In this document: in pieces, positions 7,739 through 62,620 of the stretch | Layout: each line of letters opens with the position of its first letter | How positions within the stretch are numbered: position 1 is the stretch's first letter | Assembly: GCF_964194025.1 (NCBI RefSeq) | Contig: NC_134474.1 | Span: 1,178,001 to 1,242,000, forward strand | Length of the DNA: 64,000 nucleotides | Direction of reading: 5' to 3' | Source: Convolutriloba macropyga | Lineage: Eukaryota | The notes under the pieces: generated by a model | Seen by the model: only the letters and a program-made list of their open reading frames with translations | What the model was told of the DNA's origin: nothing | Database searches by the model: none | Translations under genes and position numbers: made by a program

Positions 7739-7900
7739 TTTTGACTTTTGAGAAGAAATCTGATCGACTTCTTTGCAGCTTGGTTTTTGATGAAATGGCG
7801 CGGCGCGTTTAATTGGAGAAGGTTTGTTTTTGTAAGCTTTGCTTCCAGGGGACTTCTTTCGTCTAATGACGCGCTGACCGATGTGAAGTGATCCTCCTAA

Positions 7901-8170: not shown

Positions 8171-8173
8171 CAG

Positions 8174-44056: not shown

Positions 44057-45072
44057 GGCATCGTTTGAAATAGAAAATTCGGTCATGAAATGACTTGGGT
44101 TTTAATTGTTGCCACATTACCTCTTAGGTTTCACAGAATTGCTACCCCACTCCATCCTTTAGATTTTACCGCTATTGGAAGAATTATCAGATGAGCAATG
44201 TTGTTTGAGCTGCTGCGCGCATAATTAATTTCTCGGAACCCTTCTGATACTGATGACACTCTCGTTCTACTTTGAGTTAAAGAAAAATTGTCCACAGTGA
44301 ACGGTGAAGAAGTGGGTATACAGCAGAACCTTGCGTAGACATAAATATCCTAAGTTCAATCCCCTGACTCACTTTCATTTGTGCTCTCAAGTAATATTAA
44401 CAAATCAATATATTGAAATGAATTCTCTTATTAATTTACACTGGAAATGGATTTACACTCGGTGTTAGATACAATTGAGAACCGATTGGGACTCTTTGGT
44501 TTCTCATAAGTTACGCTCTCTCGGTTTTTTAGGCTTGTGCCCACCATTATAGATTCAATTTTCCTTCAATTACATTAGACAAAATCTGATCCATTTGTTG
44601 TATCCATGCAATTTTAGTTTTCAAGTGCTGATATTTATTTTAAACTTTAAATGTTTTCCATTGCTTATTGAATGTTATTTTAATTTAATTGATTTAATTG
44701 TGAGGATATTTTTCAGGGAATCCACGAGCAAGACTTATCTGCCAACGAAGGTGTGAACAATAGCCTCTCCTTGGTACGTACTGCTTATAACTACCATATC
44801 ATTAATTTATACAGTTAAAATTTCCCACTTTCTATATTCGCCGTTTTCATCAAATTTTTCAAGGATAATTTTCGGGAAATTTTCATAGGAGAAGTTCAAA
44901 TTTTGAACTTAAGAAGCTCTAATAGCAGATGAAAGATGTTCAGTTGTAGGCATTGAGTTTTCCGAGCGTTCACTTTATAACGTTTCAGTTTTATGGGATT
45001 TATTATAAATCCTTCCACAACGCTGAAGCGTAAGAAAACGTTTAGTAACTACCAAAAAAATTGAAAGCTCAA

Positions 45073-45201
45073 AGTAGTGGATAAAACAGGGCTTCCAGCC
45101 ACCAGCAAAAATTTGACCCTTTCTCCAAGCGCTAATCACGCATGTCGAATCTGGCCAAATTTTACTGATTTCTGGAAGCCTTGTTTTATCCACTACTATA
45201 T
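45073..45201 (+). repeat. Left TIR of element B (self-complementary)
   Basis: AGTAGTGGATAAAACA...TGTTTTATCCACTACT; reverse-complement match to 61399-61526. Confidence 0.95.
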
Positions 45202-45410
45202 ATTAGCTCTAAATTTGATAAAAATTAAAATTAAAATAAAAAAAAACAAAAAATCAAAAAATCAAAGCAAAATTTATATTTCACTCTTTAAGAGTGATTC
45301 ACTCTTATTCGCAGTGATCCCCAGTAGAAAAGATTGCTCTTTTTCGCCCTTAAAGAGTGAATCCCTCTTTTTTGATATTTTTTTATTTTTTTTATTCTTT
45401 TTATTTCAAA

Positions 45411-46286
45411 TTATCTATACTTTTCAATAAATTTATATTTTCTTTTTGTTTTTTCTATATTTATTCCATTATTAATAAGAAATGATACAAAATTATAGTA
45501 TTTACATGAACAACTGTCTTCTGTTTGGTTAATAACTAAAGGACTTACAGCTCTAGGACTTTGCCAACTAGGATTAATTGTTTTATCCGCGAAGCGGTTA
45601 CACCGATCAGTTATATCAGGGAACCTGCTTTGCAGATTTCTACTAAATCCTCTAGTCATATCTATATCTGGATGTTGTTTCTTTACATGAGCCCGTATCC
45701 CATCATATCTCACAACAGAAGTACAATATGGACAATTAACTTTAGCTGAAGTACAACTTCTACATGTATACTTACCCTCATCAAAATTATTTAGTGGTTT
45801 TATATAATTACACTTATTACAACATCTAGTTAATACTTCTGGGCTGGGGTTAAGGTTAGGGTTAGGGTTGGGGATAAGGTTAGGGTTGGGGTTGGGGTTA
45901 GGATCTGAGTTCGAGTTATAGTCATAGATAGAACCAGAACCAGGACTAGAGCTAGAACTGGGGTTAGAACCAGAACCAGAACTAGAACTAGAACTAGAAC
46001 TAGGGTTAGAACTAGAGTTAGAATTAGGGTTAGAACTAGAACTAGGGTTAGAACTAGAATTAGAATAAGAATTAGAACTAGGGTTAGAACTAGAATTAGA
46101 ACTAGAACTAGATTCATTTTTTAAAGAACAACCCCACGGAGAAAAATTATTAGCACAAATACCACTTAATATTATATTACCACACATGCATTTATCAGTT
46201 TTATCTTTATGAAATGATTCATAATGATATTTTAAAACAGCAATGTTTCCACATTTATAATTACACTCTAAACATTGTAAAAGCAT
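45411..46286 (-). CDS. Multi-zinc-finger protein with S/N/P low-complexity linker (291 aa)
   Basis: CLECNYKC...HYESFH, CNKC...CRSC, CPYC...HVKKQH; TTATAAATG start context. Confidence 0.75.
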   Translation of the reverse strand: MLLQCLECNYKCGNIAVLKYHYESFHKDKTDKCMCGNIILSGICANNFSPWGCSLKNESSSSSNSSSNPSSNSYSNSSSNPSSSSNPNSNSSSNPSSSSSSSSGSGSNPSSSSSPGSGSIYDYNSNSDPNPNPNPNLIPNPNPNLNPSPEVLTRCCNKCNYIKPLNNFDEGKYTCRSCTSAKVNCPYCTSVVRYDGIRAHVKKQHPDIDMTRGFSRNLQSRFPDITDRCNRFADKTINPSWQSPRAVSPLVINQTEDSCSCKYYNFVSFLINNGINIEKTKRKYKFIEKYR

Positions 46287-46314
46287 TTATAAAAGGGTAA
46301 ACTATAAAATTTAC

Positions 46315-47979
46315 CTAATCCTTCACAGGGTAATATTTAACCATGATTTCAGTTAAATCTTTAGTATTATCTTTAGATGTGATACACTCTGCTAAATATC
46401 TATTTCCTAAAGTATTGAGTGTATTAGTTTTACATCTCTTATCTAAAATCAAATCAAGGTCTAATTCTTTTTTATCTTTAACAAAATTTATAATCTCTTC
46501 TCTGAGTTCTTCATTATTTATATATAGTTTGTTTAAAAACCTTCCTCCCTTTCTATTCAAAATTCCCATCTCTTCATTGACGAAGTCATAGTTACACTGA
46601 TCAGTATACGAACTTTGTTCGTGGTTTACCAAACTGCTTCCCTGATCAGTATAACTGCTTCGTGTTTCACCTTCCAACTCTTCTCCATATCCAACATTAA
46701 CTAATGTATTTACTCAACTCAACATTGTACTTGCTCCCATTGCTACAGTTCCAGCATTTCTTGATACTGAATTAGGATAAAAACAATTAAATATATATAA
46801 ACCTGCGCCTATAATTCCACCAATATTTGATAAAATTTTCATACCCTTTCCCATAATCATTTTTTTAGTTAGAACATCATTCTGAATCTTAATATTATTT
46901 AAAGTAAGAAGTTTATTAAAATAAAACTGATAATTATCATGATTAATAACACTTCTATCTGTTGCATTAGTCATTAGTGGTTTCATATATGCTATAAGTT
47001 AATTTATATCTTCTCTCTCTAAATTATCTTTTAAACTAAGAGCTTTTAAATCAAGGAAACCAACTCTTGAATTATATATCATCGTTCTATTACTACTAAT
47101 AATAATAAAAGTATTTTCCTTTTTACTATATTTAATTATACCATAACGAAGTTCATCTGACATTTCATCTGTATAATTATAATAGTTACTATTTAATTCA
47201 CTAATTATTTTATTGAAGTCATGTTCCCATTTATATATCTCATTAAAGTTTTTAAATAGGTCAGGTCCATTATAAGTTGTTAAATGAATAGTATCACAAC
47301 TCATTCTTGCTGTATTAATTATTTGAGCTGGTTTATGACACATTACAATCATTTGAATATTATAATGTCTTTCTTCAGTAAAATAATAATCTATATCCTT
47401 ATTTAACCTATCACCCATATCATCAAGTACTATTACACAATTTTGAAATTTATGCATATTATTTTTTGTGATCATATTTATATCACATTTATTAAACCCA
47501 GTATAAAACTTATTAGACTCAGGATCTATCCAGTCTCTGTCATCTTTACAAACTATAACTATGGACCTTTGGTCTTGATCTTGAACTTGATCTTGATCTT
47601 GAACTTGATGTTGAACTTGATCTTGAACTTGATCTTGAACTTGATCTTAAACTTGATCTTGAATTTGCTCTTGATCTTGAACGTGATGTTGAACTTGATG
47701 TTGAACTTGATCTTGATCTTGAACTTGATGTTGAACTTGATCATGGTCTAAGTATAACTTTAAGTATTGTCTAATAAAATATGTTTTACCCGTTCCAGTT
47801 CCACCATAAACAATAGTAAGTAGTGGTGACTTTTCATATTCAAATCTAACTAGACTCCTATTCATAAATCCACCAAAGCTTTCTTTTAGTTTTGTATATT
47901 TACTTGGTCTTGAATCAAATATTATATAACAAATTCCAATAATAATAATAAAAATAAAAACTGCACTACTTGTTTCCTT
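46315..47979 (-). pseudogene. Second packaging-type ATPase with N-terminal TM anchor and C-terminal hydrophobic extension (~554 aa; three in-frame stops, start mutated to AAG)
   Basis: ORFs 47647-47865, 46999-47475, 46714-46986 and 46315-46677 share one frame. GGTGTGKT, IVLDD, FTEERHYNI. Confidence 0.82.
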
Positions 47980-48063
47980 TTTTATATAATAAATATAGAT
48001 TTGATTTAGATTTAGACTCAGACTTATAATTAGACTTAGATTTAATAAATTTATTATATAAAA

Positions 48064-48694
48064 ATGCTCATTCTAACTTTTGAGGAATTCAATAATAAAT
48101 TTAATATTGATAATAATGCTATGAGTGATATCAGAATAAAAGATATAGGTAAAGATATAAGTCTAACACCAATTGAGATTGTAATGAGAGATCAAACTCC
48201 AGATAGTATCAGTGATCCTAACTTCATTATTGTAAATCTACATCCAACTGAAGGTACACATTGGTTTTTAGTTATAAGAAGAGAAGGTGGTCCAACATAT
48301 TACTTCGATAGTTTTGGTGTAGAAACCCCAACATTATTCCTAGAAGAATATGTTGATCTAGGCTCTAATGAGAGAATACAACAATATGATGAATCTTATT
48401 GTGGGGCTTATTGTTTATATATGATCTATCTTATTGATAGAGGATTTAGAATTAAAAGTGCTTCGAATATTCTAGTTAATCAATGTAAATATCCAGAAAT
48501 ATATAATGAGTGTTCTTGTTTAAGTTGTAATGTTAATCGGGAAACTTGTTTCGCAGATGATAATGATAATGTTAATGATAATGATAATGTTAATGATAAG
48601 GATAATGTCAGTGATAATGATAATTATAATGAAAATGATAATGTTATTGATCTACGAAGTAGCTTTACTAATAATGATAAAGATAATGTTAATG

Positions 48695-48729
<35 letters not shown>

Positions 48730-49466
48730 GATAGGAATAATGAATCTAATAGGAATAGCAATAGTAATAGCATTAGTAATAGTCCTACTAATAATATCCG
48801 TGAAGCGGTTTACCGATATCTGTAAACATAAATGATGATCTATTTTCATGGCTAAATGATGACGATATAATTACTGAAGCCGCATTCCCAGATAACTTTA
48901 GATGTATAATATCTGGTCCTAGTGAATGTGGTAAGACATTCTTATTGAAAAATCTACTTCTAGCTAGTATATACTTTGATAAGTTATACATCATTGGACC
49001 TACTGGTGATCAGTACCATGGTATAGAAAGAATAAACCCAAAAAGAGATGTTGAATTTATTAAAGATATAAAAGATTTACCATCTCCTGATAAACAACCC
49101 AAAGACTTAAAGAAACTAATGATATTCGATGATGTTAGAGCCAAGGAACCAGTTATCAATGAATACTTTTGTAGAGGTAGACATAATAATTGCAATATGA
49201 AATAACTTAATCAAAACCTGTTCTCTCTGGATAGGCAGAGTGTTAGAGAGAACTGTAATCAATTTATTTTATTTTAACAGAGAGGTAAAGTCCTCATATC
49301 TATATATCAAGATTTCTTTAATAATGTTGAACTTAGTTATAATGATTTTGCTAATATATGTAATAAGGTATGGAAAGAGCCTTATAATTATATTGTCATT
49401 GATGTAACTAAAAATAAAAATATTAATGGTAAACTAAGAATTAATTGGGATCGGAGAGCTTTGTAG
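48064..49466 (+). pseudogene. Adenain-like protease fused through an N/D-rich linker to a packaging ATPase (1-bp frameshift at ~48810, two later stops)
   Basis: VNLHPTEGTHW, YFDSFG, QQYDESYCG; then GPSECGKT, MIFDD, RGRHNN, RENCN, EPYNYIVID. The ATPase frame has no ATG of its own. Confidence 0.82.
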
Positions 49467-49484
49467 TTTAGTTTAAGTTTAAGT

Positions 49485-49635
49485 ATCAGGGAACCTGCTT
49501 CGCAGAGAAGTGTAGGTCTAAGTACAAGTCTAAGTATCGGGAACCTATTTCGCAGATAAGTATAAGTATAAGTATCGGGAACCTGCTTCGCAGATAAGTA
49601 TAAGTGTAAGTATCGGGGGAACCTGCTTCGCAGAT
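49485..49635 (-). repeat. Four intergenic copies of the hairpin micro-repeat separated by TAAGTA hexamers
   Basis: ATC(A/G)GGGAACCTGCTTCGCAGA(T)-like units at 49485, 49536, 49574 and 49612. Confidence 0.9.
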
Positions 49636-49645
49636 AAGTATAAGT

Positions 49646-50458
49646 CTAAATCAAATGTAAAGTAAAACTTAATAAATCACCATTAAAGTCTATAGGTCTT
49701 CCATGCTCATCTTTAATATGAAATTCTATATATTCTATTCTATCTTTAGTTACATTTTGATACAAGATATTAGTTGGTATAACATTTATCAAGTAACCTG
49801 GTGGTTCTGTTAGATAAAAAGTATGTAATATATCTGTATCTTTACCATTATCTTTAGCTCCAGATATAATATTGCAATGAATGTTAATAGTACTAAAACC
49901 CATAATATCAATAATTTTCTGAGATTTATATCTACTTTTTTATAAATTATTTTTCTAAATCCTATTAATGAGGCTAGTGAGTTTTCTATATCAAAGCTGA
50001 GTGCTCCTTGTTTTATTTCCATTAAACATTTCATCGTATTCTTATCAGGTTCTATGCTCATGTGCTCCCGGTGTAATAGTTGAATATAGCAACGGGATTC
50101 TTTTATAATTATGATTAAGTATAGATGTAATGTTTGGGCTTGAGGTAGAGATAGGGTTAAGGTTAGGGTCAGAGCTAAGAGCCCGAGGTAAAGCTTCATC
50201 ATCTTCTATAACAGTACTAGCATATAAGAATTGATTATTTCTCCTATTCACATTAAACACCGAATTATAAACAGATAATCTAATTAAACCTAATTTTGTT
50301 GTATTAAGTATAGGTTCAATAAAGTTAAACTTTTCATTTGGTTTTAACATTCTAAAGTTAAATGTATGCTCTTCTTTAGTTTTAGTTAAAGCTTCGTGTA
50401 TATTTTGTAGTTCTCTTAACATTAAACTATCGGTGAAACCGCTTCGTGAATCAGTCAT
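49646..50458 (-). pseudogene. Minor capsid protein (penton-like), frameshifted
   Basis: LSVYNSVFNV...NNQF, ITPG, INIHCNII, PPGY, DEHGRPIDFNG...FTLHL across three frames. Confidence 0.82.
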
Positions 50459-50474
50459 TTTTTATCTAATAAAA

Positions 50475-51719
50475 ATGGATTTTAATTTGGATACAACTTA
50501 TGGTTATAATAATGATATACATAAAAGTAAGATTATAAAATATAAACCTAATAATCTAGCAACAATGAATACGGTTAATACCAATGTTAATATCATACTC
50601 AATAGAGAAGAGAATCACTTAAATTTGCGTGATTCATATCTAGATATAGAGTTTGTTGTATCAGATGATGCTGGTGGTGTATTTGCTATTGATGCTAATA
50701 TCAGATTAGTTAATTATGGTATGATGGCATTGTTCAGTTCAATTAAGCTTGAAACTAGTGGTGGTTGGACAATTGAATATATAGATCATTGTCATCCTAA
50801 TCTATTGATGTATAAGTTATTAACTAGTACTGTTGATGAATATGAGAGTGGTTTTGTTAAAAATCAGGGCAATAGAGATAGTCAACTTAAAAGTGACCAT
50901 ATTGCTGCACAACGAGGACATTTGTATATGATGATTAAGATGAGTGATCTATTTGGTTTCGTAAATGATTTAGGAAAGATTATATATGGTTTAGGATTTA
51001 AACTATTATTAAAAAAGAATAATAATGATAGAGCTCTATATAGAGTTAATGCTAATCCTGGTGCAGTTGCTAATGATGGTAATATAGAAATTAGAGATAT
51101 ATCATGGTGTGTACCTAGTATTGATCCTAGTAATGATAATAGAATTATTGTACAAACGGGTTTAAGTAAAAGGAATAATGTAGACTTTAGTTATTATGAA
51201 AGAAAGACATTTTATAAGAATGTACCCAATGCTACTAACTTCTTGTTTGATCTTGGTATGGAAAGTGGTATGGAAAGACCGCAATATATAATAGTTGGTT
51301 TTGAAAATAATAATGTTAATGAACAAACTCATGATGCAAGTACATTTGATGTAATGAATGTTACTGAGTGTTATTGTAAGATTGGTAGTGAGTTTTATCC
51401 CGAGGATAGAATGAATATTAATTATGGAACCAATAATTATAATGAGGCTTTTAAAGAGATTGTTAGCTTTAATAAAGATTATAATGGGCTATCACATAAT
51501 ATAAAACCATATATAAATCACAGAACATTCAAAAGTAATTATAGAATATATGTATTCGATACTAGATATCAAAGGGATCATATAGGTCCACAACCAATAC
51601 AACTTAACTTTAAATTTAGTGCTGCAGTTGCAGATGTTATATGTCATGCATTAGTTTTAACTAAGAAGGTTATTAGTGTGAATAGTGATGGTAATAAGAT
51701 GGTAGACACAATATCATAG
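50475..51719 (+). CDS. Major capsid protein (414 aa, intact)
   Basis: LRDSYLDIEF, ALFSSIKL, SDLFGF, ISWCVP, ERPQYIIVGF, FYP, IYVFD; size and context fit a Polinton MCP. Confidence 0.85.
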   Translation: MDFNLDTTYGYNNDIHKSKIIKYKPNNLATMNTVNTNVNIILNREENHLNLRDSYLDIEFVVSDDAGGVFAIDANIRLVNYGMMALFSSIKLETSGGWTIEYIDHCHPNLLMYKLLTSTVDEYESGFVKNQGNRDSQLKSDHIAAQRGHLYMMIKMSDLFGFVNDLGKIIYGLGFKLLLKKNNNDRALYRVNANPGAVANDGNIEIRDISWCVPSIDPSNDNRIIVQTGLSKRNNVDFSYYERKTFYKNVPNATNFLFDLGMESGMERPQYIIVGFENNNVNEQTHDASTFDVMNVTECYCKIGSEFYPEDRMNINYGTNNYNEAFKEIVSFNKDYNGLSHNIKPYINHRTFKSNYRIYVFDTRYQRDHIGPQPIQLNFKFSAAVADVICHALVLTKKVISVNSDGNKMVDTIS

Positions 51720-51870
51720 ATATAATTTAAGTCATAGATATAATTTAAGTCATAGATATAATTTAAGTCATAGATATAACTCTAGCAATAATTATAATTT
51801 TAGATATAACTCTAGCGATAGTTATAATTTTAGATATAACTCTAGCGATAATTTATAATTATAGTATAAT
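51715..51870. repeat. Short tandem repeats (18-mer x3, 30-mer x3) downstream of MCP
   Basis: CATAGATATAATTTAAGT x3; TAGATATAACTCTAGC(A/G)ATA... x3. Confidence 0.8.
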
Positions 51871-51940
51871 ATAGTTATTGTTATAATTATATACTTATAC
51901 TTGTACATAACCATATACTTATACTTATATTTATAGCTAG

Positions 51941-52135
51941 TCAGCTCAAATTGTTTTTCTTGTTAATACCTAACTATTTCTTATTAGTATTAACAAAACC
52001 TTTAGCATAAATAATGTCTAATTTCTATTTATTCTCTAGAGCCAAGCCTCTAGCTTCAAGCTTAACCTTAGCCTTGGGCCTAACCTTAGGCTGAGGCTTA
52101 ATAACAACAAAGGGATTATACTTTTTAACTTCCAT
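51941..52135 (-). pseudogene. Small basic protein (64 codons, two in-frame stops), absent from the ORF track
   Basis: MEVKKYNPFVVIKPQPKVRPKAKVKLEARG..., preceded by TATATATAAAAAATAATG; back-to-back with 52154. Confidence 0.5.
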
Positions 52136-52153
52136 TATTTTTTATATATAGAA

Positions 52154-52573
52154 ATGGGTCTTTTAAATAATTTCAAAACTAATTCATATTGTGTTGGAGG
52201 TAGACATTATAGTGGTACTGTTAATATAAGAGGAGCTATCACTTCAAAAGATACTAAAATGTTAAAAGGTAATTGTGTTTTATGTAGAAGGAATAAATCA
52301 ATGACAGTATCTGATGCAACAATAGAAGCAGAAGGACTTAAAGATTTCTTTCAAAGTGTTGGTAGGGCTACAGTTAACTTTGGAAAGAAGGTTGCCAATA
52401 ATCCAGTAAGAGCATTAGAAATAGCAAGTAAAATAGCAAGTGCAGCTGCAACTAGAAACCCTAGAGCAGCTTTATCAGCCACACCCGATTTAATAAAATT
52501 TGCAACTACTGGTGAAGGTATAAAAGTAGTACAAAAAGGAAGAGGGTTATACTTAGGTACAAAGAAAAGATAA
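52154..52573 (+). CDS. Zinc-ribbon plus amphipathic-helix virion core/lytic-type protein
   Basis: MG start, YCVGGRH...GNCVLC, AEG|LKDFFQSVG amphipathic helix, KGRG|LYL tail. Confidence 0.7.
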   Translation: MGLLNNFKTNSYCVGGRHYSGTVNIRGAITSKDTKMLKGNCVLCRRNKSMTVSDATIEAEGLKDFFQSVGRATVNFGKKVANNPVRALEIASKIASAAATRNPRAALSATPDLIKFATTGEGIKVVQKGRGLYLGTKKR

Positions 52574-52763
52574 TTATTTGATTATAATTATGATTATTTT
52601 ATGTTTATGATTATGATTATGATTATATCCATGCTTATATCCATGATTATATTATGTTTATGATTATGATTATAGCTATGATTATGATTATATATTTATC
52701 GATAAATATTATTACTAATATTATTATTACTAAAAACATTGTTATTACTAAGCACTAATTTCT

Positions 52764-53330
52764 TTAATCTAAAAAAATACTCAGCTTGATTTTCTTATTC
52801 TTTTTATAATCCTCATAAAACTTAACAAATTCATTATACTCATCATTATCTATTTTATTATCATTCATTGATTTAGTATATAGTTTATTAAACTTATCAC
52901 TAAACTGTTTACTTAAAATATACATTTGTGAATACTTTATAATTTTATTTCTAATTTTAGTATTAATTGTTTTTGATAATGAACCACAAACAGTTGCTGT
53001 AGCAAAAGCTGTTGGTATAGAATAAGCTAATCCTATACCTGTTAATGAAACTGATGTTTTTGTTGCAGTTGTTGCTATTGATGATAATACTATTTCTGTT
53101 ATCTCAGCTATGTTAATATAATTTTTATATCTACTTAACTTCTTATTATAGTTATTAGTTTCAGTTTCATAATAATTTCTAATATCTTTTATAATGTTAA
53201 TACTGTTGGTAAATTTATTATTAGCTTGAATCTTTTCGTTTATCAATCTTTCTGATACTGATGACAAATCTGGATATAGAAATCTCTCACTCGGTGCTGT
53301 TGGATTGGTCATTGCTTTGCTTATTTTCAT
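52764..53330 (-). CDS. Membrane protein with PTAP and LYPDL late-domain motifs
   Basis: MTNPTAPSERFLYPDLS, coiled coil, hydrophobic hairpin, DNKIDNDEY EF-hand-like end. Start at 53330 or 53312. Confidence 0.75.
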   Translation of the reverse strand: MKISKAMTNPTAPSERFLYPDLSSVSERLINEKIQANNKFTNSINIIKDIRNYYETETNNYNKKLSRYKNYINIAEITEIVLSSIATTATKTSVSLTGIGLAYSIPTAFATATVCGSLSKTINTKIRNKIIKYSQMYILSKQFSDKFNKLYTKSMNDNKIDNDEYNEFVKFYEDYKKNKKIKLSIFLD

Positions 53331-53991
53331 TAGCAAAAGTTCTTTCTATTTCTTTCATTATATCTTCTTGATTAAAACAATAATGCATCTCAAGTCTATC
53401 TTTCTCTTTATTATCAAGTAACTTACTTTGTAAAAGTATAGCAATTATATATTGTACTATAACACCTCTAAGAGATTTATTGTATTCTTTCATTTCTCTC
53501 AGACCGTTAGTAAACATTTCATCTAGTTGTATGTTAGTGATATTCTGATTAAACTTATTATTATCAAATTCTTGCTTTAATTGATTATATTTAGAGATAG
53601 TATCTGCAGCAACTTTATTACAAAACTTAACAGTATTTCTGACTTCATTTTTTGATTCAATAAACTCATTAATTAGTTCTTCATTAACTTGTGTTTCATT
53701 TAGTTTTAATGTTTTAGTTGTAACTTTATCAAAGTCACCCTTTCTTAATTCAGTTATGTTTCTACTTAAAATGTCTATTTTATTAGAAGAGGATAATAAG
53801 TTATTGTCACAATACTCTTTATTAACAACAACTTTTTCATCTCTAGGAGGAAGAACATTTGTAATTTTATAGGTATCTTTCATATCAATATCATCATTAT
53901 CTTCTAGGAATAACCCACGAGCCTTACTTAGTATTAAGTTGTTTCCATTCCCTATATGAGGTTTCGCTTGGTTAAATCTATTTCTTGTCAT
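53287..53991 (-). CDS. Fibre/spike-like coiled-coil protein (234 aa)
   Basis: DMKDTYKITNVLPP....VVNKEYCD resembles the trimeric neck motif KIxNVxxPxxxxDAxNKxYVD, followed by heptads. Confidence 0.55.
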   Translation of the reverse strand: MTRNRFNQAKPHIGNGNNLILSKARGLFLEDNDDIDMKDTYKITNVLPPRDEKVVVNKEYCDNNLLSSSNKIDILSRNITELRKGDFDKVTTKTLKLNETQVNEELINEFIESKNEVRNTVKFCNKVAADTISKYNQLKQEFDNNKFNQNITNIQLDEMFTNGLREMKEYNKSLRGVIVQYIIAILLQSKLLDNKEKDRLEMHYCFNQEDIMKEIERTFANENKQSNDQSNSTE

Positions 53992-54025
53992 TATTTATAT
54001 TAAGAAAAAAATCCGGCTTGCCGGC

Positions 54026-55015
54026 TTAGGACCGTAGGTCTATATTTAATGATTCCAAAACCTTATTATTAGATTCAAAATCAAACTCGGATTTCAATAG
54101 TTCCCGTTCATAATATTTGCCTTCTATTATCTCTCCATTAATATCTTCTATTTCATATGTTGGTGGATGTGTTTTTAGAATTTCATTCACTTTAAACAAT
54201 TCTCTATTCCATTTAGAAGTGTAACCTTTAGAGAAGATATTACGTTTATCTACATTTCTAACATAATCACCAACTTTAAGTTTAGGTTTAATATTCTTAA
54301 AACTAAAAGTGTATTTAACTTTATCAGGATTATTAGAAGCATCAACTGGTGTCATATTAATTGTTGAGTGAATGTTATTGTTATATGTTACAACAGCTTC
54401 ATTTCATATATTTACCCAATTACCATCGCCCTTGATTAACATTGGTTTATTTATTATGTGTAATAATGTTCTATTAAATCTCTCTAAAAACACATCCTTT
54501 AAATCACTATAAGTAGAATATAGCTCTATCCCTGAAGCGGCTTTGCGGGTTCCATATTCTTTAAGTAAAGATTTAAATGTTTTATTGTAAAACTCACTAC
54601 CTCTATCTACCCATAACTTTTCTGGTTTTCTAGGTTCAGAGCCACCTTGTGGATGTTCACTAAATACTATTTTAAAACAATTAGTTATAGATAAACCAGA
54701 TTTATTCTATGAAGGAATAGCCCATGCATATTTTGTGATTATATCTATAACTGTTAATATAAGTTTATAATTATTGTTGTATTTACTTAGAGATGACTTA
54801 TCAATTAAATCAGCTGACCATGTTTCATCTTTATATAATGGTATTATTCTTTGTCTTCTAAACTTTGTTATTCGAGGACTGAATACTTTTTTAGCTAGTT
54901 GTTGTTGTTGTTGTTTTTCTATCGTTTTATTTATCGACATAGTCATCTGCGAACGAGCTCTGCTCGTGGCTAGCCAAGCAGGTTCCCTGATAGCTTCGCT
55001 CAGGGACGTAGTCAT
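54026..55015 (-). pseudogene. Retroviral-like (rve, DDE) integrase, frameshifted
   Basis: WSADLID, VIDIITKYAWA, LWVDRGSEFYN, ERFNRT, YNNNIHST, GDYVR...FSKGYT..W..ELF, GKYYEREL. Confidence 0.93.
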
Positions 55016-55023
55016 GGATTCTT

Positions 55024-55891
55024 CTATTTACCATAATTAAAAACAAAATTATCTAGTTGGTCTTGATTAATATAATTCATAGATAATAGTTGCTTAGATA
55101 TATCTAGCACTTCATCATGTAATCCATCATGACCAGCTTTTGTTTCTAGTATTAGTAATTCTAATCTTTCTAATAAATTATTTGGGTTGCCATGTAATCT
55201 TCTGCCAAATATATCATCTCTTACCTTTATTATACGTTTTATTGTTCTATATCTAGCGCTTTTCTTATCCCCTTTTCCTAAATCATATCTAATATCCTTT
55301 AAAAACCTTTTAATTTTGTTTTCATCTTCCTCAACCTTATCATCATATGATGCATTTGTTTTAGTAAGAAAATCAGTAAATCCTTCTGAAAACTCATATA
55401 AAATATCCCTAACTAAAAATGCACCCTGCTCTAGAGTTATATTAACACCATTCATTTTATATCTCCTACTAGGTAAATCTACGAGTTCTAATTTTAATTG
55501 AGGATTAGTTTGAGCCCCCATGAAGAAGTTTGGCTGTTTTTGTATCAACATAAACTGGTGCTATATCTTGTTGAGTCCCCTTTAACGTTTCACCAATCTT
55601 GGAAGCAGTTTCATTAAACTGGGAACCAGCTTGCTCGATCATCTTAGTTTGTTTATCTAACTCTTGATTTTGCAAATCTATTGCTCTTAATGTTTGTTCA
55701 CTTAATGCTAGATTCTGTTCATTGTTTGCGTTTATCTGCGAAGCAGTTTCACCGATAGTTTTGGTTAGAGGATCAAATAACTCTTCTATTTCACCATACT
55801 ATTCTTGTTGTTTTAATTTGTCTTCTAATCTATTTCTTCTGTTTTGTTTTTCTATATTATTTAATTCTATAGGTTTATCTAGTTTAGTCAT
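55024..55891 (-). pseudogene. Conserved Polinton coiled-coil protein with C-terminal PNxLxxRLxLLxxxxxAG motif
   Basis: MTKLDKP...ELFDPLTK coiled coil, a stop and a frameshift, then NPNNLLERLELLILETKAGHDGLHDE. Confidence 0.7.
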
Positions 55892-55927
55892 TTTATATAT
55901 ATTGAAAAATTATAATAAGAGTAAAAA

Positions 55928-56248
55928 ATGGATAATGAAAACAGCTTCTCTCTTAATCTAAAAAGATGTTTAGCTTGTAAAAGACGTTGTTATACTACAG
56001 ATGAGTTTAATGATCATATTAAGGAACCAAATCATGATGATTTAATAATTTCAACTTATTCTAAATATGTAGATGGGGCTAAGAAGATAATAAAATTTCT
56101 AGAATATAATAAAAATATAATAGCTGGAGCTACACTATATAAGAATACAATCATGGGAGACCTCAAGGAAAAATATATGGCTCAGATAATGATTTATAAT
56201 ATACTAACTACCAACCATATGGATGTAATGAATGAATTAGGTCTATAA
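55928..56248 (+). CDS. Small C2H2-like zinc-finger protein
   Basis: CLAC...FNDHIKEPNH; AAAAAATG start; convergent with pPolB. Confidence 0.65.
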   Translation: MDNENSFSLNLKRCLACKRRCYTTDEFNDHIKEPNHDDLIISTYSKYVDGAKKIIKFLEYNKNIIAGATLYKNTIMGDLKEKYMAQIMIYNILTTNHMDVMNELGL

Positions 56249-56264
56249 TTATTTGTTATAAAAA

Positions 56265-59200
56265 TTAGCAAAGCTCGTTATATAATATAATAGCAACTTC
56301 AATTAACTTTCTATCGTCATTAATGGTTAGTTCTAGAATATTATTAACCAGTAGGTCTTTGTCTTCATCTAATGATCTGCGAAGCAGTTTCACTGATGCT
56401 TGGTGGATCATTTTTATTAAATCTCTTTTGAATAGATATAGATTCTCATCATGAGGATAGCTTTTAATATTGTTTTCATAAAACCTTTTATCATCAAATA
56501 TATTTAAACTAATCTTACTTGTTTTTGTTGTTGTCATGTTATCGCCAACTTTTTGTATTCTACATTCATCTACTGTTCTCTGTGTATTATTCATTAATGC
56601 ATCATAATAATCTATGTGCCTAGCATTATCATGCTTCTTTATTCCTTTTTCTTTAGTGTTTTTAGGATAATTTTTGAAGCTATATGTTTTGGGGGACAAT
56701 GCTATAAAATCCTCAATAATCCTACTTCCCAGCTCGTGCTTAAACTTGCCGGGGACTTTATTATTAGTTTTTATAGGTATGTCTAGATTACTTAAGTCCA
56801 TATGCTCATCAATAACTTTACCTTCACTATAAATCAATACGAAACTGTCCGTATCCATATAGTGAAGTGTTAGATCTTTGAGGGATGGTTGTAGAATATT
56901 ATAGAATACATCATACATGTGTAATTTACTTAATTCTAAGATAGTAACACCTACATATACTGGAAAATCATATTCTATTTTTTTCTTTATATATTCTATT
57001 TGGCTATAATTTCTATATCTAGTTATATTCTTAAAAGTTGGTTTACTTACACTTTTCATTATCTTTTCTTCATCATGCAAAAACTTGCTTTGAAAGAAGT
57101 GTAGAGGATTCATGCACATTCTTCCATATAAAGAGTTATTCATTAATTTCCTTACATCTTTTTCTGCTTCAGTTTTAGCTGTCGCTCTTTTATTTGTATT
57201 GTTTTGTATATAATCGATACATATATAATCTTGTTTAAATTTAATTACTCTATGTTTTTTTGTTACTTTTACTCCCATCTTAACATAGAACTTTAACATC
57301 CTATAATGAACAATATATTCTGTTTTGTTGTTTTGGTCTAAAAATAATTTCTCGGACCTTGCTTTACTTTTCTCTCTTTGTCGGTATCCCAATTCATTAT
57401 CATTTATCTTTCTTTTATTAGGCATTAGTGCTAACCGTTCTGTTCTCTCTTTACATTCATTAGTATAATCAATATCACAAACTATATAGTAACCATGATC
57501 ACTATCATCTGGAGTATTCAATATTACATCGAGGAACCCGCTTGGCTTGCCACGGACGAAGTCCGTTCGTGGATCTAGAGTAGTAGTAGTAATAAACTCA
57601 AAATCCTTATAAGGTAACTTTTGCATCATTGCATAACCATATAGGTTGTTTGCGTCTATGTACCATATGGTCTTACCATCAATGTTATCTATATATCTAT
57701 CACCTATTATTCCGCATATACCACCTCTCTTTGCTCCAACAAAATCATCTAGCATTTGTTTATCTTGCAATGTATCCAATGTAACACCACTTGACATTAA
57801 CCAACAATCAAAACTATAACCTGGGAGACTTACATAATGTATTGAGTTGAGCTTGAATTCTTTCATACTTAGTTTAACATATTCATTCATGTAATAGTCT
57901 AATATTTCCACGTCATTCTGTAAATACTCTAAGTTAGATCTTTTCCAGTTTTATGAATGTTTTCATTATTAAAGTTATCCACTTCCTCTTGTGTTGGTAA
58001 TTTATTATGTAGAGAGGATTTAAAGTCTTCTCTCTTTAGATTACCTATAGCTTCTTGGTAGGTAGCTTTGCTACTATACGCCTCTAAACCAAAGTATTCA
58101 TATGGATATAATGTTTTAGTTTTACATCCGTATATCTTTGCCATTTGATCTAGAGGCATAGCTAAGAAGTTATAACTGTCTAAGAGTTCGAGACAACCAA
58201 TGCTAATTATCTTAGATTTACCAGCAGCTAGTGGAATGTTATCTACTTTTCTTTTATCATTATTCTGCCTAAAGAGTTCACTGTATAGTGGGTTGAAGTC
58301 AGAGCCAGAGCCATTATGGAATATTACTGGAATGAAGTTTTGTTGTTTGTACCTTAGATTACATATTTTACATGCTGGTCCTCTATATATACCAGTTTCA
58401 TGACAATGATCTCTTACTTTATTGATACATGTTTTGCTGCAGATGTGACAAGTGTTATTAGTTTCATGATATAATTTATCTTCTTCTGTGAATATCATAT
58501 TTTCATTATGTTTGAAAGTTTCTATTTCTAACAGATCTCCAGCAAATCTTTCGATGCAGCCTAGACCGAAGTAGTGTTTGAAGTTACCTTGCCAGGTGTA
58601 ACCCACAGCTATTGGAATATGTTCAGCTATTACATATTTTAAATCATTAGTTGAGACTTCAACAATGCAACATTCTATATCGGCAGTTATATTTTTTTAT
58701 ATTCTGACGTTTGTGTTCATTTACAAAATTAATGTTTTTTCTTAGGACAAACAATCTCTGGTTTGAATGAGGTGCTGCAGTCGTGTTTATCATATTTAAT
58801 TTGTGAGTTAAACCAATAGGTACACCTATCACAATAATAATATTTAATGTTGTTTTTATTTGGTCGTTCTAACAGGGTTTTTATATTTTTTATTAGGGCA
58901 CAGTGTTCTATTTGACCATTACTCCAAACTAGTATTCTTACATCTTTTCTATCTTTATTGAGATCATCCACTTGTTTAAACAGTTCTATTTTACCATTAC
59001 CACAAGGTGTGTATACCCAAATTTTAATATTATACAATTTCTGTATTCTTATTATATAAGCAAAATCATCTTCATGTTGTTGTCTTGTTTCAATTAGTTT
59101 ATCTACATATTTACTTTCTCGAGTTGCATGGTGTAGGGCGGGATGTAGCCAAGCAGTTATAGTTAGTCGTAAGCAATTGTATTTATAACTACGTATATTT

Positions 59201-59982
59201 AATGATTTAGAGTTTTTGAGATCTGGAGGTAAATCTATATAACTACCAATAGATGCTTTAGTTGGTTCAAAGTTTAACTGAATACTTCTTATTCCAAGAA
59301 ACTCAAAATCATAACCCTAACCTTCATATATTTCCTTTTCGAAATCTAGCCACCAATTGAAGTCACCATATTCATATATTGCATTATTATTAATATAATC
59401 AGTATTGAAAAATATTTTAGTAGTTTTAACTTCTTCTTTGGTTCTCTTCTTATAATCACATTCAGCCGTGATCTTATATTTAAAACTCTTAACTTTACGA
59501 AACTGGTAACAGTTTTTAATTTCTTCTAAAGAGTAATTAGTTGCTTCATCTATATCTTCAATGTAATTCCCACCTTTATCAGTAATGTAAAATTCTCTCA
59601 TGTTCTGACTTGAGTATATATCGAAGTCTTCTGTGTTTTCTAGATACATGCAATTGTGACTACATGAATGAGTAGTTAGAGCTACTTTGCTTCTAAATTT
59701 TTCATGACATTCTTTACATTCATACTTAATTCTGGTGTAGATATCCTCTTCAGTTTTAGTTTTAGGTTTGGTGGCTGGTTTAGTTTTTATATTATAATCA
59801 TCTTCATCCAAATTATACACCCTCTCCGAGATTTCCTCTTCTTCAGACTCAAACATTTTCTCCAATAGTTCCTTATGTTTGAGATCGTATGATTGATGCC
59901 TGTATAAAGCCTTCTTTGATTCAAAGGATAGATTACAGACATCACAGAAGTTTATGACACTAGTATTATTCGATTGAGACAT
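56265..59982 (-). pseudogene. Protein-primed DNA polymerase B with N-terminal C2H2 fingers and Endo VII/HNH-like insert
   Basis: CDVC/CKEC fingers, GSYIDLP, CHIC...VRDHCHETG.YRG.AC..CNL, LLDSYNFL, YPYEY, IDANNLYG, KLMNNSLYG, YMDTDS, PKTY, KGI, FDDKRF. Confidence 0.95.
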
Positions 59983-60027
59983 GATGTATTTTTTTAGGGA
60001 AATAATCAAAAAATAATTTTTCGAAAA

Positions 60028-60357
60028 ATGAAAATGAAATGTGATAAGTGTATAAATAAACCTTGGAAAGAATGTTGTAATAATTGTAAAGAATTAGAAT
60101 ATTCTTGTTCTGTATGTAAAAATATGGTTAAGGTTAAATATTATATAGAACATTTGGGATACCATTATTCTGATCCTGATCAATATCTAACGTGTAGTAT
60201 GTGTAATGTTTATAAACATATATCATTATATAGATTTAGAAATAGGAAATGTAGACTATGTTTTTATCTTCATAGATATAGATATGGTCACACTAGAAAT
60301 CAATTCGGAGAGCATGTTTATAAGTATAATATTCAAGAAGACATAGAAAAACACTAA
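60028..60357 (+). CDS. Small Cys-rich zinc-binding protein (109 aa)
   Basis: Five CxxC pairs; back-to-back with pPolB. Confidence 0.65.
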   Translation: MKMKCDKCINKPWKECCNNCKELEYSCSVCKNMVKVKYYIEHLGYHYSDPDQYLTCSMCNVYKHISLYRFRNRKCRLCFYLHRYRYGHTRNQFGEHVYKYNIQEDIEKH

Positions 60358-61398
60358 TCACTGTGTTTCCACCGATCCCAGTTTTTTTGACTGTGCTATT
60401 ATTGTTCGCTTTCTTTCATATTTAGCAACCGCTAATAGTATAAGAAGTCAACAAGCTTGGTTTAACATCGCATTACACTGCTTAGCAGATCGAATGAAAA
60501 GTGCATGTCATGCTAAAATGGCCGCCGCCATTGACAAAGAAAGCCACCACCACTAACAGAATGAAAACAAGTGAAAATTTCGAATATAAGATGCCCTTAA
60601 AAATTAGCTAGTAAAGTGAGTATTTATTAAAATCTTTATTTAATTTTTAATAGATTATACAAATCATTCAATTTAATAGAAGGATTTAATTATTATTTTA
60701 CTTTAAAACATGTAATTACTTGGGAAATGATAAATAATTTTAAGTTAAAAATCATGTGAGAATATTCTAGAAAAAGAATGTTCTAGAATAATTCTCCACG
60801 TGGGGACCTTTATCCTCAACGGCACTTTTTGGCTATTCATCATGAGTTTCACTTCACTACAAAAACTGTAAAATGATACATTAATATTGTTCAGTCAGCT
60901 TAATATTAGTATTCAGTCAGCCTAATAATTAAAATTAAAATTGTTCAAGCATTCTGTAGTTGCACCCTCCCCCACAGTTGCCATTAAGAAAGGTCGAGCA
61001 GTACTGCCGTAGCGTGGTAAAGGCGAGTCAACCTTTTATCAAGACCTCCCAAGACTCGGCTCAAAAATGTAACCAGGTACATAGAATCACTCAGTTAAAC
61101 ATCATAGATCAATCGTCTCCTGGTTAAAGTCAAAAATTTTAAAGCAACTTGTTTCTTATTATCCAATTCTAAGCAATTTTGAGTTATTTTCAGTCCATCC
61201 GATTCTATTGAAAAAAAACTTTGTGAGATGATTAACCTGATTTATTTCAGTATAGTTTGGCATATTAGATATGAAATTAGGCTTAAACCTAGCTTTGAGA
61301 ACTTTTGGATATTAGTGTATGAATTGCATAAATTATACTGGCTAGCTATGTACATTTTTGTACACAATTGTGCGCGTAGTATGTATTTATAGTGGTGA

Positions 61399-61526
61399 AT
61401 ATAGTAGTGGATAAAACAAGGGATTCAACAAACAGTAAAATTTGGCCCGATTCGACATGCGCGATTAGCGTTAGGAGAAAGGGACAAATTTTACTGGTGG
61501 TTGAACCCCTTGTTTTATCCACTACT
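61399..61526 (-). repeat. Right TIR of element B (self-complementary)
   Basis: AGTAGTGGATAAAACA 61403...TGTTTTATCCACTACT 61526, followed by the TSD. Confidence 0.95.
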
Positions 61527-61859
61527 GCTCAAATGCAGGGTAATTAATTAAAACGTTTCAATATCGTCACGCAAGGTTGAATATTGGCAATTTTTAGGTT
61601 GAATTTTTGCGTTTTGACTTTAAGCTATTGTTCATTCATATCCGAGGTTTGTTTTATTCATGTTACGGGCTCAACTACAACAAATACACTTAGCGTTTCC
61701 TATCAGTCATCTGGGCAATGAGCAGAGTTTGTGAAAATACTCAAAATTGATCGACGAACGGAACAGAGCAATTAGGTCAACTTAAAAAACTGGAAAATAT
61801 GGATTAGGGATTTAAATATGTGAATAATGCAAACTAAGGATAAGATTCAATAGTTTCAA

Positions 61860-62620
61860 AAGGTGTTTCAAGTCTTTATCAGTACTTCTCAAGTGAAATT
61901 CATGTCTTGAATTGGCGAATAAGTACTGATCACGTCTTATTTCAAGTGTTAACACTTGTGAAGACTTGTTCAAGTCTTGTTAAGTCTAAATCAGGTCTTA
62001 CCCAAAGTCTCGAGTCGAGTTGTCACCAATATTTGACAAATCTTGAGCCAAGTCTTGACCAAGTCTTGTCAAGTATTTTTTTTTGCAATGTTAGCAGAGT
62101 ACAGTTTTGAGAAGGCGTTATCTATAAGTAATGCATTTTAAAATTAGCTGGAAGTGCTCACTTTTTAACTGATTTTTGTTAAAATGACCAATCCAATTTT
62201 GATATGAGCATCTACCAACTTAAAGTATCCCCAATATTCAGTCGCAGATCAATTTGTTTTGAATGGGCAGTAAATAGTGGCCATGATTGGTATATTTGGC
62301 TGGCACAAGAATTTTTTTCGTTCACTCTCAAATGAATTCTTCAGAAGTGCTCTTGTTTTCTTGGGCCTCGTTTTTCACATTGGAGACTTTTCAAAAGGCA
62401 ACTCATTATAAATGGCCGTCTTTTTTGTCGTTACGAAACGAAAAACACAACAAATTCTGCTACTGACTAGGCATGTCAATTATGGCATGGACGTGTTAAA
62501 TCTTGGCCAAGACTTGCCAAGACTTAAGACTTGATTGAAAATTTGCCAAGTCTAAAAATATCTTGATCAGAGCTCTGATACAGTACTGACTCGAGACTTG
62601 CAATAAGACTTTTTCAGTGT
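61860..62620. mobile_element. Possible MITE-like element with CAAGACTTG/CAAGTCTTG subterminal repeats
   Basis: CAAGTCTTG cluster at ~61960-62075 mirrored by a CAAGACTTG cluster at ~62505-62612; exact ends unclear. Confidence 0.4.

Follow-up and report, generated by a model that had tools for sequence, protein, structure and literature searches.

The inverted terminal repeats (ITRs) of the adenovirus type operate through a panhandle and jump-back initiation. Parvoviruses carry hairpin telomeres such as the T-shaped ITR of the AAV type, and the telomeres of poxviruses undergo flip/flop. Polintons, also called Mavericks, span 13–25 kb and are bounded by terminal inverted repeats (TIRs) of 100–1500 bp and a target-site duplication (TSD) of 5–8 bp (10.1101/2023.08.22.554363). 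Terminal palindromes with proposed hairpin folding are described for endogenous virophages of Halocafeteria seosinensis and for a PLV subtype (bioRxiv 10.64898/2026.07.28.741278). Among self-synthesizing transposons, the TIRs of casposons sometimes contain palindromes as well (PMC4046053).

The element of Convolutriloba macropyga described here occupies positions 45073-61526 of the window (i.e., the whole 64-kb stretch of DNA that was analysed), which amounts to 16.5 kb bounded by terminal units of 125 nt and 124 nt. It is a dead, degraded Polinton/Maverick, i.e., a virus-like transposon, with genes for a double jelly-roll (DJR) capsid, a putative ATPase, an rve integrase, and a protein-primed polymerase, and six of its genes are broken. 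Its TIRs are flanked by GCTCAA on either side, within the 5–8 bp of a Polinton/Maverick TSD, and the sibling insertions L033, L037, L039, and L040 have 6-bp TSDs as well. Apart from the terminal units, the features of the element are as follows:

45067..45072, no strand: left copy of the target-site duplication GCTCAA, 6 bp
45423..46286, minus strand: leftmost gene, cysteine-rich protein with low-complexity middle; reading frame open
46327..47976, minus strand: packaging-ATPase-like gene; three in-frame stops relative to an intact sibling
48064..49463, plus strand: candidate protease-containing gene; one frameshift and two stops
49649..50458, minus strand: homologue of a 287-aa sibling gene neighbouring the capsid gene; five stops
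50475..51719, plus strand: double jelly-roll major capsid protein gene; intact
52154..52573, plus strand: conserved 139-aa gene; intact
53981..55015, minus strand: rve integrase gene; three stops
55225..55891, minus strand: homologue of a 228-aa sibling gene; one frameshift and two stops
56268..59982, minus strand: protein-primed polymerase gene; at least two frameshifts and one stop
60028..60357, plus strand: rightmost gene, 109-aa cysteine-rich protein; intact
61527..61532, no strand: right copy of the target-site duplication GCTCAA, 6 bp

Three of the proteins that define a Polinton/Maverick, i.e., the capsid protein, the integrase, and the polymerase, are recognizable either in the window copy itself or in its siblings. 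The capsid protein matches PF21738 with 81.8 bits (cut-off 27). The rve integrase profile scores 37.4 bits on sibling L041 (cut-off 32.6) and 29.4 bits on L039, and the integrase gene of the window aligns over 100% of the L039 protein yet carries its three stops. With Pfam DNA_pol_B_2, L037 reaches 87.4 bits and L033 71.6 bits, but the window gene has just E 0.0013 on one piece; it covers 82% of the intact 1494-aa sibling protein and leaves about 18% unmatched. An HNH domain (Endonuclease VII-type) lies inside the polymerase. The ATPase reaches 21.2 bits with Pox_A32, under the cut-off of 22.8, and the putative protease has no match in Pfam or PDB. More than 1,200 relatives of the 139-aa gene were found, every one of them from ENA. 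Pfam searches of the ten main ORFs and the scanned sibling proteins gave no match to an HUH (Rep/NS1) nickase.

We show that the whole TIR of this lineage is one oriented, imperfectly palindromic unit of ~124 nt, which is composed of the following parts:

45073..45197, plus strand: left terminal unit, 125 nt; the entire left TIR, imperfectly palindromic and from a rare lineage of units
45073..45088, plus strand: outer 16-mer of the left unit, AGTAGTGGATAAAACA; doubled AGT at its start, invariant in window-type units
45089..45098, plus strand: outer variable 10-mer of the left unit, allele GGGCTTCCAG; pairs with 45172-45181
45099..45105, plus strand: outer CCACCAG of the left unit; opposite 45165-45171 with two mismatches that form a fixed bubble
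45120..45151, plus strand: hairpin tip of the left unit; G+C-rich, asymmetric, nearly invariant across subfamilies, orientation constant
45172..45181, plus strand: inner variable 10-mer of the left unit, CTGGAAGCCT; pairs with the outer 10-mer
45182..45197, minus strand: inner 16-mer of the left unit; inverted copy of the terminus
61403..61526, minus strand: right terminal unit, 124 nt, the type common in the family; comprises inner 16-mer 61403-61418, inner 10-mer 61419-61428, tip 61449-61480, outer 10-mer 61501-61510, outer 16-mer 61511-61526

The 64-kb window contains this 16-mer exactly four times, namely at both edges of the left and of the right unit, and AGT is doubled at all four edges; the right end of L045 has additional ACT repeats. 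An initial annotation of the locus had already described ~125-bp termini that can each form a hairpin, with four such AGTAGT-type ends in total, and the mirrored segments that it quoted are indeed present where it placed them. As single-stranded DNA, the left unit folds with -35.5 kcal/mol (z -10.1) and the right unit with -44.9 kcal/mol (z -13.8), while none of 200 shuffled controls was as stable. Terminal palindromes that are able to fold reach z -10 to -16.5.

Eleven sibling units from eight insertions in an ENA assembly, which carry four alleles, share a common layout of invariant 16-mer, variable paired 10-bp segment, bubble, and tip, and 89.6% of the cells in their alignment are paired. 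The covariation between arms that the initial annotation had predicted across the family is present in the 10-bp segment and absent elsewhere in the stem: five pairs (17 cells) are altered on both sides, every one of them inside this segment, and 0/500 shuffles matched this cell count or the covariation score in a control that ignores relatedness. The segment is hypervariable, with four alleles, and keeps Watson-Crick pairs at 7–10 of 10 positions in every unit, but the independent co-changes behind this pattern are few, i.e., about three allele switches. By contrast, the two stem positions of the bubble (columns 77/147 and 79/145) are mismatched in all eleven units, and the tip of ~32 nt is nearly invariant and conserved more strongly than any neighbouring DNA. 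Compared with the diverged sibling L037, whose adjacent interior is just 72–77% alike, the unit differs by 8 substitutions in the 103 nt outside the 10-mers, while 9 of the 20 positions of the 10-mers differ with pairing kept. Close siblings do not conserve the units better than the interior next to them (95.6% vs 94.6%). In the left unit of L039, the outer arm is that of its own right end and the inner arm is another allele, which shows the classical pattern of sequence copied from the outer arm of one end to that of the other. Together with the constant mismatches, these differing arms speak against the earlier suggestion that each end is homogenised on itself.

Within the window copy, the left unit aligns to the reverse complement of the right one with 107 matches, 17 mismatches, and 1 indel (107/125, 86% alike), in good agreement with the "about 18" differences counted previously. 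Nine of these differences fall in the two 10-nt segments adjoining the 16-mers, two more in the neighbouring bubble, and three in the tip. Four stem pairs are altered on both sides, of which three stay Watson-Crick and the other is T-A in the left but G.T in the right unit; six pairs are altered on a single side, and three of these six break pairing in the left unit. The compensatory share is about half and thus smaller than the 11 of 18 claimed at first. In 200,000 simulations with 17 random substitutions each, at least four pairs were altered on both sides with a probability of 0.004 and at least three were Watson-Crick compensated with a probability of 0.0017. The end-to-end identity of an adenovirus-type panhandle replicon is therefore not maintained in the window copy, though L033 has it in full (476/476) and L037 nearly so (2 differences in 172 nt). 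This makes the left-right difference an exception rather than a habit of the family, and the left-right panhandle of Polintons, which had been called established, is itself a proposal.

The right unit differs from five sibling left units by 4–5 substitutions, while the left unit differs from the same sibling units by 14–20 even though the adjacent 600 nt are 96–97% alike (2.6–4% differences). Because its unit is so divergent beside such similar DNA (P 1e-6 to 1e-9 for the excess), the left end looks like a replaced one from another unit lineage, of which we found no further copy, and the element like a chimeric copy. The nearest sibling shifts along the element, and a common-type left unit was probably replaced no later than insertion, within a family that appears to be mosaic throughout. 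This fits the idea of a recombinant of two subfamilies with ends evolving as hairpins that had been raised in the initial annotation. In the orthologous copy L044, both units are identical to those of the window and had thus reached their present state before the two sampled haplotypes split. The left unit lies there inside a 390-nt stretch without differences, but 9% of all windows of 125 nt from the diverged part are equally free of them, and the comparison gives no sign of in-place selection. The left-right difference is a matter separate from the fold-back end.

From these sequence comparisons, we tentatively favor a fold-back end under selection in a copy that is chimeric and dead, an explanation that may well be correct without reaching an even chance. 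The covarying stem suggests a requirement for folding of the end in this lineage, beyond matching left and right ends. The unit combines four kinds of positions: a constant inverted 16-mer at the edges, 10 bp of free sequence with arms that change together, an unpaired bubble, and a G+C-rich tip. This composition points to a cis-acting end that would be obliged to fold back, either by extruding a cruciform or as a hairpin of the single strand, with putative sequence-specific contacts at the 16-mer, bubble, and tip. The mechanism that we consider most likely is a "local panhandle" in protein-primed strand-displacement replication, in which the 3' end of the displaced strand would fold onto its own inner arm and restore a blunt 26-bp duplex terminus. 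Once the terminus is restored locally, the far end of the element would be dispensable. Copying would proceed through the hairpin, such that nothing is flipped and the arms are not templated from one another, and arm pairing would be maintained by selection. The doubled AGT at the terminus would suit a jump-back start.

More specifically, a pPolB Polinton lineage might have swapped the long-range left-right panhandle for a local terminal hairpin that rebuilds each duplex origin, with the 10-bp segment as an "identity tag" of the lineage, though we regard this version as unlikely. If it were true, the tag would bar competing subfamilies in one genome (>1,200 copies) from the use of foreign ends, and ends could be swapped like cassettes, which is suggested by the mismatched pair of the window copy.

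Matching arms could also arise by mechanical correction without any function, either through intrastrand template switching (quasipalindrome mutagenesis) or through fill-in synthesis on an eroded 3' end that has folded onto the inner arm. One arm would then be overwritten over a short distance with the sequence of the other, creating clustered "compensatory" changes with no selection on the hairpin. The co-changes indeed form a single 10-bp patch in the outermost 26 nt, where fill-in of a recessed end would act, and several differences switch together per allele; accidental annealing is also named as an alternative for terminal palindromes in the Halocafeteria preprint. However, the two mismatches right beside the patch stayed uncorrected in 11 units, including those of a subfamily with an interior about 25% diverged, conservation is highest in the asymmetric tip, and neither unit has changed since the haplotype split. 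Such correction would account for the matching arms but not for why the 10-bp segment alone is hypervariable. We consider it a serious yet rather unlikely contender.

Subterminal binding sites occur in many DNA transposons. Each end could similarly present two protein-binding sites without ever folding, with the 16-mer and 10-mer occurring twice, inverted, as a putative site for an element-encoded protein such as the integrase, the N-terminal part of the polymerase, or the polymerase zinc fingers. The 10-mer would be the specificity part that co-evolves with the protein so that all copies per element change together, and it is indeed hypervariable from one subfamily to the next, with uniform sequence inside L037 and in the right unit of L039. 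Beside homologous interior, the inner 16-mer is kept at 16/16 positions without an outer partner in L033, L040, and L045, and L040 and L045 contain stacks of several ACTACT-ended motifs. Because L033 has plain 476-bp repeats without a terminal hairpin (z -1.6 and -0.6) and still keeps this motif, the 16-mer may have a role that requires no partner. Conversely, the ends of L040 (z -8.5 and -10.2) and L045 (z -10.3 and -11.1) have a different sequence and are again palindromes, as is L037 with its predicted Y-shaped fold (z -8.6), i.e., other subfamilies changed the entire sequence but retained the palindromic form, which argues for shape over site. The window copy and L039 also each hold different alleles inside one element, and the in-step change of two to four dispersed sites would require a copying mechanism regardless. 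We consider unfolded binding sites an improbable explanation.

It is very improbable that the ~125-bp unit is a self-standing MITE, bounded by inverted ends of its own and with arms that stay alike as in any pair of TIRs, and that the 16.5-kb element is framed by two copies from a diverged population of such MITEs. Four identical 16-mer ends and the different lineages of the left and right units would agree with such a composite, but a profile search revealed no solo unit in 351 kb (window and sibling loci), nor did we find any in 241 million metagenome records or IMG/VR; the junction of unit and interior is conserved across subfamilies, and unit orientation relative to the interior is constant. 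Parvovirus- or poxvirus-like hairpin telomeres, in which the termini of a free genome would be folded or covalently closed, would serve to prime or resolve its replication, and would have their unpaired tip inverted each round, are barely credible and largely refuted by fixed orientation because the tip was never flipped in 10/10 intact ends (probability about 0.001 if each were an even draw). Terminal palindromes with unpaired bubble and tip, the Y/T-shaped fold of L037, the HNH domain, and a hairpin-priming model proposed for related elements would agree with such telomeres, but the polymerase is a protein-primed one, the scanned ORFs gave no HUH nickase, and the HNH insert is shared with the hairpin-less L033 type. 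The ten intact ends come from independent insertions, their profile scores are 104–140 in the observed orientation vs 48–76 when flipped, and the lone flipped unit (L038) sits in a rearranged end; the flip/flop that had been expected from parvovirus-like ends is thus not found among them.

The likeness of the fold-back end to the telomeres of parvoviruses and poxviruses (for the latter, see those cited in PMC11296320) is therefore one of shape only: the terminal palindrome is imperfect, some bases stay unpaired, and the fold of one subfamily (L037) is branched, but flip/flop and an HUH nickase are lacking and the polymerase is protein-primed. Casposons are likewise self-synthesizing transposons with a palindrome within the TIR, but they occur in prokaryotes, integrate by means of Cas1, and share no ancestry with the element, and their palindromes have no known function. 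With adenoviruses, the element shares the protein-primed polymerase, the terminal repeat, and a doubled terminal trinucleotide (AGTAGT), whereas the proposed fold would form inside a single end rather than join the two, and end-to-end identity is not kept in the window copy. The gene set with its putative ATPase, the 16.5 kb, the 6-bp TSD, and the AG...CT termini are those of a Polinton/Maverick, for which polymerase HNH inserts (in the nematode and oomycete "pPolB2") and the exchange of polymerase modules between otherwise similar elements have already been described. Unlike in usual Polintons, the TIR is just about 124 nt and itself a palindromic unit with a co-varying stem segment, and the partners that pair in the usual model are the two TIRs of an element; the units of the window copy are 86% alike. 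The Halocafeteria elements are likewise integrated, belong to the same broad virus group, and carry a palindrome at the TIR extremity beside the TSD; these palindromes measure 52 nt, are said to occur mostly with non-pPolB replication genes, and, in the accessible part of the preprint, come with no analysis of covariation or orientation. The window unit instead comprises 124 nt and the whole TIR in a classical Polinton with pPolB and rve integrase, and window-type elements encode pPolB rather than the replication genes associated with the Halocafeteria palindromes. Terminal palindromes have thus already been reported in related elements, and the ends of the window element are a variant of this known phenomenon.

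The Polinton in the window ends on either side in an imperfect palindrome of about 125 nt, hereafter called the unit. Each unit starts and finishes with the same 16-mer, whose four copies in the 64-kb window all lie at unit edges, and since the inverted repeat between the element ends runs just 4 nt past the units, the unit makes up the whole terminal inverted repeat (TIR). As single-stranded DNA, the left unit is predicted to fold at -35.5 kcal/mol (z -10) and the right unit at -44.9 kcal/mol (z -14). The A+T-rich interior (G+C of 26-32% vs 36-41% in the surroundings) carries a Polinton gene set of double jelly-roll capsid gene, A32-like ATPase, rve integrase, and protein-primed PolB (pPolB), the latter with an HNH insert of the Endonuclease VII type. 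This copy is dead, with six genes broken relative to intact sibling proteins; reading frames remain open in the capsid gene and in six small genes.

Features of the element in the window (gene breaks are relative to the intact sibling protein)
45073-61526, Polinton element, GCTCAA on each side
45073-45197, left unit, 125 nt, 16-mer AGTAGTGGATAAAACA on both edges
61403-61526, right unit, 124 nt, 16-mer AGTAGTGGATAAAACA on both edges
Polymerase gene, at least 2 frameshifts and 1 stop, about 18% without match
Integrase gene, 3 stops
ATPase gene, 3 stops
Supposed protease gene, 1 frameshift and 2 stops
Homologue of a 287-aa gene, 5 stops
Homologue of a 228-aa gene, 1 frameshift and 2 stops

Degenerate arrays of 6/12/18-nt repeats lie within or beside the element's coding regions (45825-46124, 47539-47779, 48524-48787, and 51716-51850) and encode low-complexity Ser/Asn/Pro or Asp/Asn stretches. 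Polymerases of all subfamilies (window 56268-59982, minus strand, and sibling loci L036, L037, and L033) have the HNH domain (Pfam Endonuclease_7) directly before the exonuclease part, weakly so in L033; C2H2 zinc fingers are located close to the N-terminus.

The family has a copy number above one thousand, and its capsid protein and a 139-aa protein have more than 500 and more than 1,200 relatives, respectively, all from ENA assembly ERZ25071359. From this assembly we sampled fourteen loci (L033-L046), with L036, L041, L042, and L046 represented without their right ends. L043/L044 represent this very insertion in a second haplotype or strain, with flanks and element aligning at 97% over 19.6 kb. 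Both of their units are identical to those in the window, so the difference between left and right units described below predates the split of these haplotypes or strains. The alignment of window 43168-62573 with L044 is a mosaic, with 2-8% divergence on the left up to about 56.07 kb and none from there through the right end, so that the element is identical over its right 5.4 kb, as are the 1,047 nt of aligned right flank; two haplotypes recombining within one population could produce such a pattern. The left unit lies inside a 390-nt stretch free of differences, and 9% of 125-nt windows in the diverged part are likewise free of them. Because difference-free units are thus ordinary for their local background, we rejected this comparison as a sign of selection in place.

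How the unit varies was studied in 11 units from eight insertions, which aligned without difficulty and in which pairs were counted on the hairpin.

Parts of the unit and alleles of the 10-mer in the 11-unit alignment
16-mer stem, practically invariant
10-bp segment beside the 16-mer, holds all five pairs altered on both sides (17 cells)
Two positions of the stem on the inner side of that segment (bubble), mismatched in 11 of 11 units
Remaining stem, varies by private, pair-breaking changes only
10-mer allele AGGGATTCAA, the common allele
10-mer allele AGGATTCCAA, one of the four alleles
10-mer allele [A/G]GGCTTCCAG, in the window's left unit only
10-mer allele AGGAAACCAG, in L037

Despite four alleles, 7-10 of the 10 positions of the 10-mer are Watson-Crick paired in every unit. 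None of 500 shuffles reached 17 cells or the observed covariation score, in a control that ignores relatedness, and with 11 units and four alleles the independent events behind this pattern must be few. Among close siblings, the unit is not more conserved than the interior (95.6% vs 94.6%), and an excess shows up only in the comparison with the distant L037. There, the adjacent interior is 72-77% alike and the unit outside the 10-mers has 8 substitutions in 103 nt, whereas 9 of the 20 10-mer positions differ. By this comparison, the unit has a conserved frame, in which the bubble is fixed and the G+C-rich tip is conserved, and within this frame lies a hypervariable segment that is predicted to stay paired. 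An invariant edge, a segment conserved in its pairing alone, a bubble that never closes, and a conserved tip would be expected if the unit were a cis element whose function requires folding and recognition, and this is its most likely role. The strongest rival, correction by template switching or fill-in without any function, accounts for the patch of co-changes but explains neither the uncorrected bubble right beside it nor the conserved tip.

The initial annotation had reported that the two ends differ at about 18 positions, about 11 of them in mirrored segments still able to pair, and had proposed either that each end folds back and is homogenised on itself or that two subfamilies with hairpin-like ends have recombined. 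We count 17 substitutions and one indel between the left unit and the reverse complement of the right unit. Four stem pairs are altered on both sides (three still Watson-Crick, one turned into G.T), six on one side only, with three of these breaking a pair of the left unit, and three differences fall in the tip. Compensation as such holds up, given that at least three compensated pairs arose in 0.17% of 200,000 simulations of 17 random substitutions, though it concerns about half of the differences rather than 11 of 18. The divergence itself is the exception: the left and right ends of L037 show 2 differences in 172 nt, and those of L039 are identical over the outer ca. 100 nt, with a different allele in the inner arm of the left unit, as if one end had been copied to the other starting at the outside. 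Being only 4-5 substitutions away from the left units of five siblings, the window's right unit is of the ordinary type. The left unit is 14-20 substitutions away from the same five, beside a following 600 nt that are 96-97% alike (P 1e-6 to 1e-9 for the excess), and which sibling is closest varies along the element. With a divergent left unit next to an alike interior and matching ends in siblings, the mismatch looks like a replaced left unit in a mosaic family and is not a family habit.

End structure differs among subfamilies. L040 and L045 have differing end sequences that are again palindromic (z -8.5 to -11), with older ACTACT-ended motifs stacked within (L040:4157-4345 and 19540-19695; L045:3723-3870 and 19660-19800). 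From the outside inwards, the stack consists of the palindromic unit, a 44-nt segment starting with AGTAGT, and, on the left only, the inner 16-mer of the window type, with a short duplicated stretch in front of it. On the right, L045 has additional ACT repeats before its target-site duplication (TSD), CTCTTG. This arrangement suggests growth of ends through additions at the tip. In L037, the outer arm is partly duplicated and the predicted fold is Y-shaped. The sister subfamily of L033 (3851-20482; also L034 and L035; TSD AAAACC, termini AGTAATGTG...) is homologous to the window element over its left 10.8 kb, and part of the old inner arm (L033:4327-4379) survives where the new TIR meets the interior. 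Its perfect 476-bp TIR extends into the polymerase gene, including the 3' end, its polymerase module lies on the opposite strand and is unrelated at the DNA level, and folding detected no significant terminal hairpin in this type. Beside the homologous left interior, the inner 16-mer is kept at 16 of 16 positions in these subfamilies and at 15 of 16 in L037. Such lone inner 16-mers support the second-ranking rival, on which the arms are paired binding sites that do not fold, but this would leave unexplained why replaced ends are palindromic again.

Tip and bubble make the unit directional (profile scores of 104-140 bits one way vs 48-76 the other), and its orientation relative to the interior is the same in 10 of 10 intact ends. 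This contradicts hairpin replication of the parvovirus or poxvirus kind, third in weight, as no flip/flop alternation appears among these ends; the initial annotation had raised parvovirus-like hairpin ends. The sole flipped unit (L038:5284-5480) is truncated by 8 nt on its inner side, and next to it 54 bp of the left interior are duplicated in inverted form, making a palindromic junction; this arrangement may record the folding back of an end. Last in weight is that the units are mini-elements of their own, since the 351 kb of loci scanned hold no solo unit, a form that the initial annotation had suggested looking for.

For a cis element that folds, the simplest reading would be that, with a protein-primed polymerase, the 3' end of the displaced strand pairs back with the inner arm of the same end, restoring a blunt duplex terminus of 26 bp as a local stand-in for the panhandle. 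Copying through such a fold would leave the tip orientation and the arm sequences as they were, in keeping with the fixed orientation and the lasting bubble, and the doubled AGT at the end would suit a jump-back start. The HNH/Endonuclease VII domain was dropped as a candidate partner of hairpin ends, since the hairpin-less L033 type carries it as well.

Elsewhere in the window, a minus-strand ORF at 5978-6496 with an adenovirus-type endoprotease domain (Peptidase_C5, 25.8 bits) sits among several unassigned minus-strand ORFs from about 800 to 10650. It gave the only match in a Pfam scan of host ORFs, and the left part of the window looks like a second, different Polinton-like remnant of higher G+C. 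At 27100-27502, a 39-nt spacer separates the two arms of a perfect inverted repeat of 182 nt. Its sequence is unrelated to that of the Polinton units, and it could be either a foldback element or an artefact of assembly. In the same genome, a Ty1/copia-type retrotransposon gene (gag, integrase; L038:1-1274) adjoins a sibling Polinton. Searches of IMG/VR for the exact 16-mer gave 32 single unrelated matches that we judged to be chance, and neither two pattern scans of JGI metagenomes for units nor a capsid-based scan of IMG/VR returned anything. Both units (61413-61516 and 45078-45192) draw Rfam matches to miRNA hairpins, but these score 31.9 and 27 bits where the cut-offs are 100 and 95, do not amount to membership, and are generic hairpin likeness.

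To our knowledge, Polinton replication and the exit from and entry into chromosomes are known from models alone, with the TIR-TIR panhandle as an assumption. The division of the unit into invariant, co-varying, never-paired, and conserved-tip parts offers a way to learn by comparison alone what is required of the ends. In practice, TIR annotation that expects matching left and right ends will misjudge such elements. HNH inserts in Polinton polymerases and exchange of polymerase modules have already been described for nematodes and oomycetes, the inserts in their pPolB2, and casposon TIRs sometimes contain palindromes inside (PMC4046053). Terminal palindromes adjoining the TSD are reported for endogenous virophages of Halocafeteria and one subtype of the PLV virus group, where the authors of the 2026 report propose a hairpin-priming model and observe that palindromes mostly accompany replication genes other than pPolB (10.64898/2026.07.28.741278). 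In contrast, the palindromes described here belong to a classical Polinton with pPolB and rve integrase. New are the palindromic end in such an element, a palindrome that is the entire TIR, and the comparative signature of co-varying segment, fixed bubble, and fixed orientation. Terminal palindromes, reported so far from virophage-like elements, are thereby extended to classical Polintons with both polymerase and integrase.
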